Of a DNA stretch of 42,445 bases, positions 7,023 to 40,709 are shown one piece after another. How positions within the stretch are numbered: position 1 is the first letter of the stretch; each line of letters begins with the position of its first letter. A program made the translations under genes and the position numbers. This DNA comes from Octopus sinensis (lineage: Eukaryota), in assembly GCF_006345805.1 (NCBI RefSeq), contig NW_021835111.1:1-42445 (forward strand). Reading direction: 5' to 3'. Under the pieces are notes generated by a model, which worked only from the letters and a program-made list of their open reading frames with translations, had not been told where the DNA came from and made no database searches.

Positions 7023-7129
7023 TATTTTAGCCTCTTACGATCGTTTCGCAGAAGAGTTGTCCCTATAATGAAATCCTATACTGATAAGCATTTATAGACA
7101 GCTCTTCTGCTCTTCAGAGATATAAAATA
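7023..7129 (-). ncRNA. Type I hammerhead ribozyme candidate, intact core, long stem II
   Basis: Minus strand: UCU-CUGAAGA-GCAGAAGAG...CUCUUCUGC-GAA-ACGAUCGU-A-AGA. 9-bp perfect stem II base, palindromic stem III, GUA triplet, stem I 3 bp + 2x3 internal loop + 7 bp (UAUUUUA/UAAAAUA). Confidence 0.85.
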
Positions 7130-7289
7130 TGAATATTGTATAATGCATCGAATGATAATTTTTTTTAAATTTGAAGTAAAATTGTAAAATGGTGTTTGTT
7201 TGAAATATAAATTAAAAATTAAAAATTACTACTTTTGATGAGAGTCTTTAAATCCAGATATATTTCTTTGGTTATTCTACTGCAATAAT

Positions 7290-7400
7290 CTTGGCCATGA
7301 AGTTTTCAAGAGGTTATTCTATTTACAAAAGTTATACAAGAAGAGCTTCTGTCATAGAGATACTATTTCCTTTAGTAGCACAAATCCCCAAAAATAAAAA
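7290..7400 (-). mobile_element. Possible Penelope-like GIY-YIG C-terminal remnant
   Basis: FLFLGICATKGNSISMTEALLV*LL*IE*PLEN resembles the PLE C-terminal L.I.EALLI...P.LN pattern, and lies ~160-270 nt upstream of the hammerhead on the same strand. Confidence 0.45.
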
Positions 7401-7401
7401 T

Positions 7402-7571
7402 GTCAATCTGAAAGAAGCGGCCCAGAATAGAACTGACTGGAGGACACTGATCCAACGAGTGACCGAGAGTCGACTTCGACTGAGCGGATAGATAGATAGA
7501 TAGATAGATAGATAGATAGATAGATAGATAGATAGATAGATAGATAGATAGATAGATAGATAGATAGATAG
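7402..7571 (+). mobile_element. RTE/BovB-type LINE 3' end with (GATA)n tail
   Basis: NLKEAAQNRTDWRTLIQRVTESRLRLSG* (stop 7489-7491) resembles RTE C-termini (WR...V..SRTRL), running straight into (GATA)n. Confidence 0.8.
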
Positions 7572-7979
7572 TGTGATTTCATCTACACAACTTACAATCG
7601 TTGCTATGTGCTCAATATGACTTACATCCGATGTGTAGTCCAGAAAAAATACATAATATTTCACAAAGTTTTTACATATGTGATGGTTGTCTACTCCTTA
7701 TGCAGTGTCTGACCACCTCCTGTACCTACACCTTAGAACCATCGTGGTGTCGGATGTGGCTTTTTAAACCAATTTTTATTAATAAAAAACACACAGAGAT
7801 TGCATATCCGTGAATATATATATATACATATATATATGCATATTTATATATAAATGCATACTCATAGACAGACAGACAGACAGACAGACAGACAGACAGA
7901 TAGATAGATAGATAGATAGATAGATAGATAGATAGATAGATAGATAGATAGATAGATAGATAGATAGATAGATAGATAG

Positions 7980-8150
7980 GGAGAATTCACGAAAAAAAAA
8001 CAAAAGACGAAGACAGGTGGGGTAGAAAACAAAAAGATGTATTAATATAACGCTCGGGAATTGAAAAAGTCTTTAACGTTTCGAGCCTACGCTCTTCCAC
8101 AGAAAGGAACACAGAAAGAAACAAGGAAAGAAAAATATGCGTGTAGCGGC
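7980..8150 (-). mobile_element. Hammerhead-bearing mini-element (PLE pseudo-LTR-like), copy 1
   Basis: Homologous to 12398-12582 and 39258-39445; flanked by (GATA)n and (TA)n. Confidence 0.8.
8071..8106 (-). ncRNA. Minimal hammerhead-like motif, variant core
   Basis: CUUU-CUGUGGA-A-GAGC(GUAG)GCUC-GAA-ACGU-U-AAAG; A6 replaced by U. Confidence 0.65.
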
Positions 8151-8810
8151 TTGATAAATAGTTATATATATATATATATATATATATATATATATATATA
8201 TATATATATATATATTATATATATATATATATATTATATATAGATAGATAGATAGATAGATAGATAGATAGATAGATAGATAGTAGATAGATGATAGATA
8301 GATAGATAGATAGATAGATAGATAGATATAATTATAATGTATTAATTTTGCATGACATGTCAAATTTACCAAAGACCATGCCTAACTGGAATACGCCCAC
8401 CAACGAATCAGTTGGAGGCGGAGCCGGGTGGGCTCAGTTATTTTTAATGAAAACAATATTATTGTTTTGACATGCTGGATTCCAGTCGTAAATGAGTGTA
8501 CGAAACAACGAAGCTTTATTCTATGGCATTGCAAAATATGGCTGCATTTACATTGAATTTTGCTATTGAAATAATATGCTATGTAATAAATGTACGTGTC
8601 TCGTCATAGCAATTTTAATCAATATGATTCAGAATGATAAAAACATTGATTGATTATTTATAAAAATCGATTACTAAACTAAGAACAAGGTCAGACAATT
8701 GTAACAGGAGAAAACCGATTACATTGATTCCAGTATTTATCTGGTACCATGTTTTGTTATGTTTCTACTAATTCTGCCGTACGCCGCTACAATGCTATTG
8801 ATTAATAAAA

Positions 8811-8946
8811 CTGAGTTCAAATGGAGTCGACTTTGCTTTTCATCCCTTCGGGATCGATAAAATGACTACCAGTTGAGCACTGGGGTCGATCTAATCGATG
8901 TAGCCCTTTCTCCAAAATAGCTGGTCTTGTACCGAAATTTGAAACT
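8811..8946 (+). mobile_element. Family C SINE, partial, with tail type 2
   Basis: ctgagttcaaat...gtcgactttgcttttcatcccttcgggatcgataaaat...ctggggtcgat...aaatttgaaac. Confidence 0.8.
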
Positions 8947-9133
8947 GATATTGATAAGTAAAACTCGCACAGGGCTCTAAAGCTCAAGTCGATTATATCG
9001 ATCGCCAGTATTTGATAGATATGTGCTATCGACTCAGGTAGGATGATAGGTAACATCGCCTCTGACAGGATTTGAACATCATAAAATCAACAGTAACTAA
9101 TGACAAAAGTAATGTTATTTTCATTCTTGAAAA

Positions 9134-9534
9134 TCTTTATATATAAAAGTGAAGTTGTGTGTCTGTCTCCTACGATTTAGATTCCCAACTACTCACACAT
9201 TTTGCTGTACAGTTTAACCAAAACCGGGTATCTTATAGTCGTGATTCATATCGAGCCCTTCTGGGTATTAGCGCGCGTCTACGATGAGTCTACGATTTTT
9301 AAAAAAATTTACCATCATTTTTTCCCATTTGTAATGAATTTTTCTGCTATTATATAAGGGAAGTAACTCTCTAAAAATGTATTATTAAATCTCAGAACGT
9401 AAAAAGGCTACAGTAACACTCCCCCTTTCTTTGTGGTTAGCCATATTGAGATGGTTATTATACTTTACATCTCTAAAAATGCTTATATAGTTATTTCCCT
9501 TACAAACCCGAGCAACGCCGGGCGATACTGCTAG
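9134..9534 (+). mobile_element. Non-autonomous Helitron
   Basis: A|TCtttatatataaaa start, 3' hairpin cccg-agcaacgc-cggg (9507-9522), CTAG|T end, no TSD. Confidence 0.88.
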
Positions 9535-38420: not shown

Positions 38421-38442
38421 AGAATGATACCTAATATATGTA

Positions 38443-38659
38443 TGGGGGGTTGCTGAAAAGTTCCTGGCTTTAAAGGTGTTCCGAAGAGCTTGGTTGGAAA
38501 CCCAATCTTTCGAGTTCTTTTACGGGACTTAGAAAAATTGAAGGACCGCTGCAATAAGTGCGGGAATTTAAGAGGGGTATATGTTGAATAAAATTATAAT
38601 TAACTGATCCTCCTGTATTTTCTTTTATCCAAAGCCAGGAACTTTTCAGCACCCTCTCG
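38443..38659 (+). mobile_element. Mariner-derived MITE, copy 2
   Basis: TIRs (c/t)gggggg.tgctgaaaagttcctggcttt / aaagccaggaacttttcagcaccctctcg; TA on the left, AA on the right. Confidence 0.9.
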
Positions 38660-39057
38660 AACGAGGTCACAATGTTAGAGACTGACTGTAGTCTATTATT
38701 TTGACTTCTGTACATTTCATTTAACTCATATCGTACTTCGTAAACAATTTTCAGCTATCCAACGAGTCTCTTGTGGTTCGTTAGGAGTGATAAAATTCCT
38801 AACCCTATCATCAACTTTTCTAGACTTCTGCAGTCTCATCTTCAAGATGTAAAACGCTATTGCCGAGTGTATCGCACCTTTTTCTGATAGAAATGGTTAC
38901 GATAGATTTAGAAAGTTGAATATTCCAAACAAATTGTTGCCAGGGTTTCATACGAAAATAAGAAAAACATACCCTATCTTGAACATAGCCGTGTTTTCAG
39001 AACTTATCTAAAAGATCTGTTCTCTCTCTTTCTATTGTCTCCCCCTCACACACAGAC

Positions 39058-39250
39058 TCTCTATCTATCTATCTATCTATCTATCTATCTATCTATCTAT
39101 CTATCTATCTATCTATCTATCTATCTATCTATCTATCTGTCTGTCTATCTATCTATCTATCTATTTACCTATATATCTATCTATCTATCTACCCCTCTAT
39201 CTGTCTGTCTGTCTATCTATCTATCTATCTACCTATATATCTATCTATCT
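39058..39250. repeat. (CTAT)n microsatellite
   Basis: Directly visible; continues at ~39445-39600 beyond the mini-element. Confidence 0.95.
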
Positions 39251-39257
39251 ACGCCAT

Positions 39258-39445
39258 GATAGATCGTTAACCACTACACACATTTTTTTCTTTCCTTGTT
39301 TCTCTCCTTGTTTTTTCTGTGTCCCTTTCTGTAGAAGGGCGTAGGCTCGAAACGTAAAAGACTTTTTCTACTCCTGAGCGTTATACTAATACATCTGTTT
39401 GTTTTGTACACCACCTGTCTACGTCTTCTGTTTTTTTTTCTTCCT
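39258..39445 (+). mobile_element. Hammerhead-bearing mini-element, copy 3
   Basis: Homologous to 12398-12582; (CTAT)n on both sides. Confidence 0.8.
39325..39360 (+). ncRNA. Minimal hammerhead-like motif, variant core
   Basis: CUUU-CUGUAGA-A-GGGC(GUAG)GCUC-GAA-ACGU-A-AAAG; A6 replaced by U, stem II keeps pairing through G.U. Confidence 0.62.
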
Positions 39446-40262
39446 CTATCTATCTATCTATCTATCTATCTACCTATCTATCTATCTATCTATCTATCTA
39501 TCTATCTATCTATCTATCTATCTATCTATCTATCTGTATGTCTATCTATCTATCTATCTCTGTCTACATATCTGTCTAGCTATTTATCTATCTGTTTTCT
39601 GTATCTATATATGAGAGTATGATTTTAAAATCAAAGTCTTTTAAATTAAAATTAGTATTTTAGACCATGACACACCAAACAGAAATGATATTTTGAAACA
39701 GTAACAATAGCTCCGAAATATAGACGAAAATAAATAAACTATGAAAACTGAACCAAGTTTCATGAACGAAGACATAAGCATACAAAGTGTGGGAGAGGTA
39801 GAGAGATGGAGAGAGAAGTAAAGAGAGATGCGGTATAGAGAGAGAGAGAGAGGAGAGTGCATATAAATCCAATTTGTTTCTACAAACGTTTGATTGAATA
39901 GCAGTATACGTTTGGTAAAAATTACACATGACAAGGGAAAACATTATTGCATAAGCCAGCCAACAGCTTACCGATGCATGGCGTAACAAGTCTGACAATA
40001 TCTAATATATAAAATGGACACACACACACACTTACACACACACACTCACACACACAAACACACTCACACATACATACATACATACATATTATTATTATTA
40101 TTATTATTATTATTATTATTATTAATAAAAATGTGAAAATATACAGATATACATATATATATGTATATATATATATATCTATCTACCTATATATATATAT
40201 ATATATATTATATATATATATATATACATATGTGTGTGTGTGTGGTGTGTGTGTGTGTGTGT

Positions 40263-40585
40263 GAAGGCGCGTGGCTTAGTGGTTAGGGCATTCGGCTCAT
40301 GATCGTAAGGTCGTGAGTTCAATTCCTGGCGGCGCGTTGTGTCCTTGAGCAAGACACTTTTTTTCATGTTGCTCCAGTCCACTCAGCTGGCAAAAATGAG
40401 TGGTACCTGTATTTCAAAAGGTTAGCCTTGTCACACTCTGTGTCATGTTGAATCTCCCCGAGAACTACGTTAAGGGTACACGTGTTTGTGGAGTGCTCAG
40501 CCACTTACACGTTATTTTCACGAGCAAGCTGTTCCGTTGATCGTAATAGCTGGGACCCTCGACGTCGCAACCGACGGAGTGCTCC
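40263..40585 (+). mobile_element. Family B-type SINE head with an alternative 3' tail
   Basis: A box tggcttagtggttag, B box gagttcaattcc, gtccttgagcaagacactt core; tail (gagaactacgttaagggtacac) differs from 15554 and recurs degraded at ~20690-20790. Confidence 0.88.
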
Positions 40586-40617
40586 TATATATATATATAT
40601 AGAACACAAAGGATGTC

Positions 40618-40709
40618 GCGGTACACATGTTTCGAGCTTTATAAAACAACTTATTCTTACATCAATGTATAATCGACATTACAGATAGTTTAAAGCCCTC
40701 TTCAGCCGC
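40618..40709 (-). ncRNA. Type I hammerhead ribozyme candidate, intact core, long stem II
   Basis: GCGG-CUGAAGA-GGGCUUUA...UAAAGCUC-GAA-ACAUGUGU-A-CCGC; 4-bp GC stem I, 8-bp stem II base (one G.U), stem III ACA/UGU, GUA triplet. Confidence 0.85.

Follow-up and report, generated by a model that had tools for sequence, protein, structure and literature searches.

The question raised by this stretch of DNA (contig NW_021835111.1, 42.4 kb, referred to below as the window) is whether the sequences resembling hammerhead ribozymes that are scattered over it are genuine, where they come from and whether they can be expected to cut RNA at present. The window is repeat-rich non-coding animal DNA: it is AT-rich (GC 29–44%), tandem arrays with a period of at most 8 account for approximately 18% of its bases (Tandem Repeats Finder), interspersed repeats are dense across it, including two families of short interspersed nuclear elements (SINEs) derived from transfer RNA (tRNA), and no real gene was found among its long open reading frames (ORFs), nor was any exon or genuine reading frame seen. 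The initial annotation had described a hidden hammerhead system in eight stretches, all of which are present: three long type I motifs, four minimal motifs and a degenerate one within a foldback. Two hammerhead architectures do occur here at high local density, represented by genuine motifs, and nothing links these motifs to one another, so that the term "system" has to be abandoned. Two of the long motifs (A and C) are real hammerhead-derived sequences, the four minimal motifs (m1 to m4) are copies of one interspersed module, and the motifs are probably independent relics of retroelements that carried hammerheads, these being either Penelope-like elements or elements mobilised by them.

The long motifs A, B and C all read as type I hammerheads on the minus strand. 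The conserved core is present in the three of them (C3 U4 G5 A6 N7 G8 A9, G12 A13 A14, the pair A15.1-U16.1 and an H17 that is not G), whereas the three helices and the G10.1-C11.1 pair are found in A and C and fail in B. Their parts are the following:

7023–7129, minus strand: long motif A, a complete type I hammerhead-like fold (descriptor scans).
7118–7129 with 7023–7035, minus strand: helix I of A, with 3 bp (UCU/AGA), an internal loop and 7 distal A-U pairs.
7111–7117, minus strand: 5' core box CUGAAGA (C3–A9) of A, read from the sequence.
7048–7110, minus strand: helix II domain of A, 63 nt; from G10.1-C11.1 onwards there are 9 perfect pairs, and beyond a C/A mismatch come 4 further pairs and then an irregular hairpin at the apex.
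7036–7047, minus strand: GAAA, helix III, U16.1 and A17 of A, read from the sequence; helix III consists of A15.1-U16.1 and a C-G pair that closes a GAUC tetraloop, and CGAUCG is palindromic.
31286–31395, minus strand: long motif B, with CUGAUGA, a helix II domain of 91 nt (10 + 5 pairs after an A.C mismatch at 10.1/11.1), GAAA, the palindromic C-AAUU-G and UA; there is essentially no pairing in helix I.
40617–40710, minus strand: long motif C, a complete type I hammerhead-like fold (descriptor scans).
40706–40710 with 40617–40621, minus strand: helix I of C, 5 bp (GCGG+U/CCGC+G).
40699–40705, minus strand: 5' core box CUGAAGA of C.
40634–40698, minus strand: helix II domain of C, 65 nt, with 8 pairs from G10.1-C11.1.
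40622–40633, minus strand: GAAA-C-AUGU-G-UA of C, in which helix III is 2 bp with the tetraloop AUGU.

Helix III has the same layout in all three, 2 bp closed by a tetraloop, and it is palindromic in A and B. The common strand and the GUA site that had been reported for these motifs are both confirmed, and cleavage is predicted 3' of 7036 in A and 3' of 40622 in C. In the unconstrained minimum-energy fold of A (z = −2.9) helix II is present, and the fold constrained to the hammerhead lies at −22.9 against −28.7 kcal/mol, that is, 5.8 kcal/mol above the minimum; helix II is also present in the minimum-energy fold of C, where the constrained fold lies 2.5 kcal/mol above the minimum. The minimum-energy fold of B is not a hammerhead (z = +0.76), and B, being only partly a hammerhead, is probably a decayed copy. 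The description of three long type I motifs is upheld for A and C, which satisfy the full descriptor given below, and holds only in part for B, which has the A.C mismatch and almost no helix I. As the initial annotation had also stated, A, B and C have no similarity outside the core boxes: their local alignments score no better than those of shuffled sequences, on which ground a shared ancestry was rejected, and this lack of relationship implies independent insertions. Each is single-copy in the window, and no repeat detected by self-BLAST covers any of them.

A consensus as short as that of the hammerhead can be expected to find accidental matches in large databases (PMC3088659), and one rival reading is that the long motifs are ordinary hairpins of genomic DNA with the boxes CUGANGA and GAAA on either side by chance. 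Hairpins with stems of at least 8 bp number more than 16,000 in the window, the only criteria passed by B and the foldback motif are loose ones, which shuffled sequences meet approximately 0.5 times per window, and Rfam lends the motifs no support. The full descriptor, applied to both strands of the whole window, comprised the boxes, a helix II of at least 4 bp, at most 140 nt between the boxes, helix III, an NUH triplet and a helix I of at least 3 bp, and its only two matches are A and C. Dinucleotide shuffles gave 0.035–0.064 matches per window at these standard thresholds; when helix II was set to at least 8 bp, the shuffle mean was 0.002 per window versus 2 observed, and two or more matches appeared in 0 of 1500 shuffles. 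Since shuffling destroys real inverted repeats, a census of hairpins was added, in which 16,634 had stems of at least 8 bp, 3 of them with CTGANGA on the 5' side and 32 with GAAA on the 3' side; both boxes flank two hairpins, A and C, against an expectation of 0.006.

A pattern defined by sequence only (CTGANGA-N10-130-GAAAC-N4-GTH) matches exactly A, B and C, all on the minus strand, with 0.06 matches in shuffles and 0 in the reversed sequence, although it was written after the matches had been seen and its looser version (C-N0-6-G) gives 0.36 in shuffles. The 3' box C-N4-G-UA, common to the three motifs, was not needed to find A and C, and B is credible only because its unusual layout is shared with these two. 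Taken together, these observations make chance a very improbable origin for the long motifs.

The minimal motifs were sought with a descriptor that tolerated one or two mismatches in the core boxes, with 100 shuffles as a control. It returns 3–4 matches, versus at most 0.05 per shuffled window and 0 in the reversed sequence, so that for both architectures the frequency of motifs exceeds that of the shuffled controls which the initial annotation had proposed. The four motifs are recovered at exactly the coordinates noted earlier:

8071–8106, minus strand: m1, with helix I CUUU/AAAG, box CUGUGGA (U6), an extra A, helix II GAGC/GCUC, loop GUAG and GAAA-CG-UU.
10362–10396, minus strand: m2, of a divergent subfamily, with helix I GUUU/AAAC (a compensatory change), box CCGACGA (C4), an extra A, helix II GAGC/GCUC, loop UCC and GAAA-CG-UU.
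12451–12486, plus strand: m3, with box CCGUGGA (C4 and U6).
39325–39360, plus strand: m4, with box CUGUAGA (U6), helix II GGGC/GCUC (A-U to G.U) and A at H17.

Their common layout consists of a 4-bp helix I, a 7-nt box, one extra unpaired nucleotide and a 4-bp helix II that starts from G10.1-C11.1, with GAAA placed directly before C15.2-G16.2-U16.1-H17 and without helix III. None of the four has the canonical core: A6 is replaced by U in three and U4 by C in two, while the other conserved core positions are retained in all. Substitutions of U4 and A6 are known from classical mutagenesis to slow cleavage by two orders of magnitude or more. Alternative registers of the motif were inspected and discarded, since none yields a canonical CUGANGA with helix II adjoining G12.

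Self-BLAST and alignment identify m1 to m4 as parts of one interspersed module of approximately 190 bp, located between microsatellites and divided into two subfamilies (m1, m3 and m4 versus m2):

7980–8175 (approximate limits), minus strand: module of m1, flanked by (TATC)n and (TA)n.
Approximately 39271–39451, plus strand: sister module.
Approximately 12400–12580, plus strand: sister module.
10262–10432, minus strand: sister module, of m2.
3099–3192, plus strand: 5'-shortened copy of the m2 type without the hammerhead segment, after a SINE head (2957–3073) and a microsatellite.
10446–10585, minus strand: SINE head of tRNA origin, immediately upstream of the m2 module in the same orientation and connected to it by (TA)n.

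The initial annotation was accurate as to the position and the Penelope-type layout of the minimal motifs; their cores, however, are not intact, and as members of one repeat family they count as one independent event. The module copies are 74–82% identical (self-BLAST), and, whichever two of them are compared, conservation is highest in the hammerhead segment, with identities of 0.86–0.95 within a subfamily versus 0.63–0.81 in the 5' and distal 3' flanks, and of 0.68–0.75 between subfamilies versus 0.38–0.50 in the flanks. All the helix cells pair (32/32), helix I contains one compensatory change (C-G to G-C) and helix II one change from A-U to G.U, and the remaining variable columns fall mostly at N7, loop 2 and H17. 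The pairing pattern of these four sequences was matched by 125 of 500 shuffles and is not significant; the conservation of the segment, seen in four sequences, is suggestive of constraint. The 5'-shortened copy indicates that the strand that bears the hammerhead is the sense strand of the element. The canonical SINE has a 3' half unlike the module, and two arrangements are considered: either a composite SINE exists that has the module as its 3' part, or the module was inserted into the microsatellite of the SINE.

The SINE to which these heads belong is abundant in the window, measures approximately 420 bp and contains an internal (TA)n(TG)n microsatellite; its consensus resembles the common octopus SINE, in which case the DNA would be that of an octopod, and a literature search with its sequence gave no match. 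Its copies lie at the following positions:

5660–6095 and 30670–31115, minus strand: copies of the SINE of approximately 420 bp.
2950–3075, plus strand, and 10446–10585, minus strand: further copies, the latter being the head upstream of m2.
235–369, 12923–13054 and 20272–20303: fragments of the same SINE.

The last stretch to be considered lies within the foldback:

11687–11891: foldback with 73-nt arms (95% complementary) around a 59-nt spacer; a second inverted pair of 27 nt (11675–11701 with 11876–11902) encloses it.

This foldback, for which Rfam gave a sub-threshold hairpin match, is possibly an element similar to a miniature inverted-repeat transposable element. The segment 11804–11840, which runs from the last part of the central spacer into the right arm, had been described as a degenerate hammerhead; on inspection it has two box mismatches and a helix II of 2 bp, and it was rejected as no better than chance.

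Established covariance models do not recover any of these motifs. The hammerhead families of Rfam (Hammerhead_1, Hammerhead_3, Hammerhead_II, HH9 and HH10) give no match in the whole window at the gathering score and none at E ≤ 10 among the best 150 of 221 matches; formally, then, the motifs do not belong to these families, which is explained by the length of helix II, by the lack of helix III and by the changed boxes. Nearly all the sub-threshold matches listed belong to microRNA families (mir-297, mir-3149, mir-1277) and were dismissed as low-complexity artefacts, since they sit on (TG)n, (TA)n and (ATGT)n microsatellites. Outside the window, scans of metagenomes with family-specific patterns and of viral contigs returned 0 copies of the motif families, a protein-word search with the translation across the m1 module found nothing, and ten ORFs of the window had no entry in the protein collection searched.

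The surroundings of the motifs bear on their origin. In Penelope-like elements the hammerheads lie close to the 3' end, and microsatellites are the preferred targets, (TA)n in the case of Naiads; some of these elements have CUGANGA and GAAA boxes 35–50 nt apart that are missed by standard descriptors, non-autonomous relatives share 3' ends with them, and old remnants of several of their lineages exist in Octopus species (PMC8557442). Dispersed solo minimal hammerheads, for their part, number thousands per metazoan genome (PMC4209133, PMC7761336). In the window, A, B and C each lie 15–60 nt upstream of an A/T-rich simple repeat, and a pure A/T run of at least 14 nt is found 10–70 nt downstream of each (background 0.18, joint 0.006, by a post hoc criterion); the modules have microsatellite flanks, and one of their copies is 5'-shortened. 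From this context we infer membership in Penelope-like elements or retrozymes. The proposal that several independent lineages of such elements colonised the locus is borne out insofar as A, B and C are independent of one another; in the window itself, a six-frame motif search found no credible Penelope remnant, self-BLAST no pair of pseudo-long terminal repeats (pseudo-LTRs) and Tandem Repeats Finder no tandem array bearing a hammerhead. The only long-period array, a 184-bp dimer at 41718–42083, is a tRNA-derived SINE without a hammerhead, and m1 and m2, 2.3 kb apart on the same strand, belong to different subfamilies, m2 coming after a SINE head.

According to the explanation that we favour, fragments of several unrelated hammerhead-bearing retroelements would have landed in the window beside microsatellites, three of them (A, B and C) each ending in a type I hammerhead just before an A/T-rich microsatellite, and the SINE-like module of approximately 190 bp would have arrived as four copies and one truncated copy. 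In the parent elements the motif would have been part of the sense transcript and would have cut multimeric or read-through RNA to unit length. The minimal type would cleave only as a dimer, two copies pairing through the palindromic 15.2/16.2 positions (PMC4209133), while A and C might fold alone as monomers, since monomeric cleavage is reported for the invertebrate form of helix III, which has 2 bp and a tetraloop (PMC7229834, PMC7761336). The genomic copies are most likely inert relics rather than a functioning locus, since they are solo, have no partner copy nearby and mostly bear disabling changes (A.C at 10.1/11.1 and the loss of helix I in B, U6 and/or C4 in the minimal copies).

Several observations weigh against this explanation. 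A, B and C are known from one copy each, the fold of C is about as stable as that of shuffled sequence (z = 0.13), and the Rfam hammerhead families gave nothing at E ≤ 10 in stretches of 121–201 nt around A, C, B and m1. By parsimony, U4 may never have been present in the minimal family, which perhaps was never a canonical hammerhead, because its two basal copies have C and a C-to-T change at CpG would create CUG. As to the elements themselves, a six-frame search of the window with motif regular expressions found no credible remnant of a Penelope-type reverse transcriptase or GIY-YIG domain, self-BLAST found no pseudo-LTR pair in the window, and A lies approximately 135 nt from the 3' end of an ORF on the opposite strand that resembles that of a long interspersed nuclear element (LINE), where element boundaries are blurred. 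Pfam likewise detected no Penelope reverse transcriptase or GIY-YIG domain in ten stop-free segments selected near the motifs; the absence of the ORF is compatible with a Penelope-like origin, since a fragment truncated to its 3' part would not contain it.

The notion that the motifs are inert has to be set against the possibility that A, C and perhaps the U6/C4 minimal variants still cleave themselves in transcripts of the locus, in which case an active cephalopod retrozyme or Penelope-like family would have evolved the long helix II and the variant cores as functional innovations. Neither A nor C lacks any conserved nucleotide or any of the three helices, and invertebrate hammerheads with their kind of helix III, 2 bp and a tetraloop, are said to be capable of cleaving as monomers (PMC7229834, PMC7761336); no part of the module is better conserved than the minimal motif, whose variation falls mainly at positions where a hammerhead tolerates it, and a natural A6C variant has low but detectable activity (PMC3088659). 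Helices I and II, however, are too unequal in length for a recognisable contact between loops 1 and 2, which is needed for fast cleavage at physiological Mg2+ (PMC3088659), and cleavage in vitro is poor even for canonical minimal hammerheads of the Penelope type (PMC4209133). The core is invariant at U4 and A6, and the module copies are solo and have diverged to 74–82% identity, which implies that the insertions are old. Present activity is, on balance, unlikely. Far less likely still is that the long motifs were recruited by the host in an intron or untranslated region of a minus-strand gene, comparable to the amniote HH9 and HH10 or the discontinuous Clec2 hammerheads, even though the three are on the same strand and long insertions within the hammerhead reportedly occur in the discontinuous mammalian examples (Martick et al., 2008). 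Three motifs would fall on one strand by chance with a probability of 0.25, the window shows no exon or real ORF, B is decayed and SINEs and microsatellites surround the motifs. The probable explanation remains that of independent relics of retroelements with hammerheads.

The significance of the locus depends on what its motifs represent in the rest of the genome. Hammerheads of Penelope-like elements and retrozymes are a known class, dispersed in thousands in many animal genomes, and the emphasis of the initial annotation on density was overstated, given that it concerned a single window chosen for looking interesting: seven motifs in 42 kb cannot be extrapolated from it. Two features may nevertheless be new, no description of either having been found in the literature searched: the complete cores of A and C with their helix II domain of 63–65 nt (91 nt in the defective B), which escape every Rfam model and probably the usual RNAmotif descriptors too, and the SINE-like module centred on a U6/C4 minimal hammerhead, which keeps this hammerhead as its best-conserved segment while two "invariant" core positions vary. 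A more ambitious reading, which we regard as doubtful, is that hammerhead variants form large families in the source genome, likely a cephalopod one, and that these families, unannotated because they are missed entirely by standard models, still cleave, alone or as dimers, and are mobilised by Penelope-like reverse transcriptases; the two families would be, on the same doubtful terms, a type I form with a helix II domain of 60–90 nt and a SINE-borne minimal form that tolerates U6 or C4. If this were true, the content of self-cleaving RNA would be orders of magnitude above the few hundred Rfam matches of a cephalopod genome (235 Hammerhead_1 matches in the Rfam-based annotation of the giant squid; PMC6962438), and a 3' module bearing a ribozyme would link a SINE family to Penelope-like elements. 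Should families with covariation be confirmed genome-wide, annotation pipelines would need relaxed descriptors, and natural variants would allow the tolerance of the core and of helix II to be examined; should the motifs be decayed relics only, they would be the ordinary footprint of old retroelement activity.

The rest of the window contains other repeats and remnants. The second tRNA-like SINE family (approximately 184 bp), in which no hammerhead was found, forms head-to-tail dimers at two loci, and the copies of the dimer at 41718–42083 are 97% identical:

41718–42083, plus strand: dimer of the tRNA-like SINE of approximately 184 bp.
36741–37112, 18497–18689, 29795–29901 and 8811–8912: other occurrences of the same family.

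Stop-free pieces at 41043–41422 on the minus strand (e.g., ...HPVLAPSDYLPFHSMKNS...) resemble the C-terminal part of a mariner-type transposase, and neither Pfam nor a protein-word search gave a match for them. At 7252–7570 on the plus strand, a short ORF ending in ...AAQNRTDWRTLIQRV... is directly followed by a (GATA)n tail, and its end resembles the C-terminus of LINE ORF2 proteins. A recent local duplication occupies part of 21910–24946 (21910–22420 versus 23604–24116, 99.4% identical; 22787–23605 versus 24116–24946, 97.8%). Approximately 2.5 kb of trinucleotide and other simple repeats extend over 32400–34960, where V, T, I, H and P recur in long runs in the conceptual translations and the GC skew reaches extreme values (+0.30, then −0.25).

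It remains to place the motifs among the systems already described. A and C share with the Rfam hammerhead families the same conserved core nucleotides and the three-helix junction, while A, B, C and m1 match none of these families at the gathering score or at E ≤ 10. The Sm-alpha element of Schistosoma is a SINE-like sequence reported to carry a canonical, active hammerhead (Ferbeyre et al., 1998); the likeness lies in a short, interspersed, non-autonomous element with an internal hammerhead, two module copies in the window following a SINE head, and the difference in the minimal, non-canonical core of m1 to m4.

The closest correspondence for the minimal motifs is the Penelope-type minimal hammerhead (Cervera and de la Peña, 2014; PMC4209133), whose layout features are all present in m1 to m4: a helix I of 4–5 bp (4 bp in m1 to m4), one unpaired nucleotide between A9 and 10.1, the G10.1-C11.1 pair, the lack of helix III, GAAA-CG-UH with a palindromic 15.2/16.2 that implies a dimer, and an occurrence mostly as dispersed solo copies in non-coding DNA. 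The core box is where they depart from it, since positions 4 and 6 are kept in the published type, with only U3-A8 covariation, versus U6 and/or C4 here; in addition, helix II has 7–8 bp there versus 4 bp in m1 to m4. Penelope-type hammerheads also have a small, mostly palindromic helix III and a tendency to a longer helix II, as A, B and C do, although their helix II of 6–8 bp is far from domains of 63–91 nt, and the Penelope ORF and pseudo-LTR of such elements were not found in this window (PMC4209133). The comparison with Penelope-like elements made in the initial annotation is supported, in that the short or palindromic helix III (CGAUCG, CAAUUG) and the minimal layout agree with published Penelope-like and metazoan type I hammerheads (PMC4209133, PMC7229834). 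Non-LTR retrozymes resemble the motifs in their type I topology and low-GC context; they differ in being tandem units of 170–400 bp, none of which occurs with a hammerhead in the window, and in having a canonical 4-bp helix II with contacts between loops 1 and 2, which A, B and C lack (PMC7229834).

The HHR_core and HHR_half_core boxes in the 3' untranslated regions of Naiad elements (Craig et al., 2021; PMC8557442) are close to the long motifs. Both have an unusually long spacer between CUGANGA and GAAA (35–50 nt in Naiads), and the Naiad boxes, too, lie near the 3' end of elements that target (TA)n microsatellites and have left old remnants in Octopus species. The comparison is with the published description only, and no Naiad coding remnant lies beside A, B or C. 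What distinguishes the long motifs is that their spacer reaches 63–91 nt and forms a clear, long helix II, and that A and C, in contrast to the Naiad half cores, also have helices I and III and a GUA site and are therefore complete folds.

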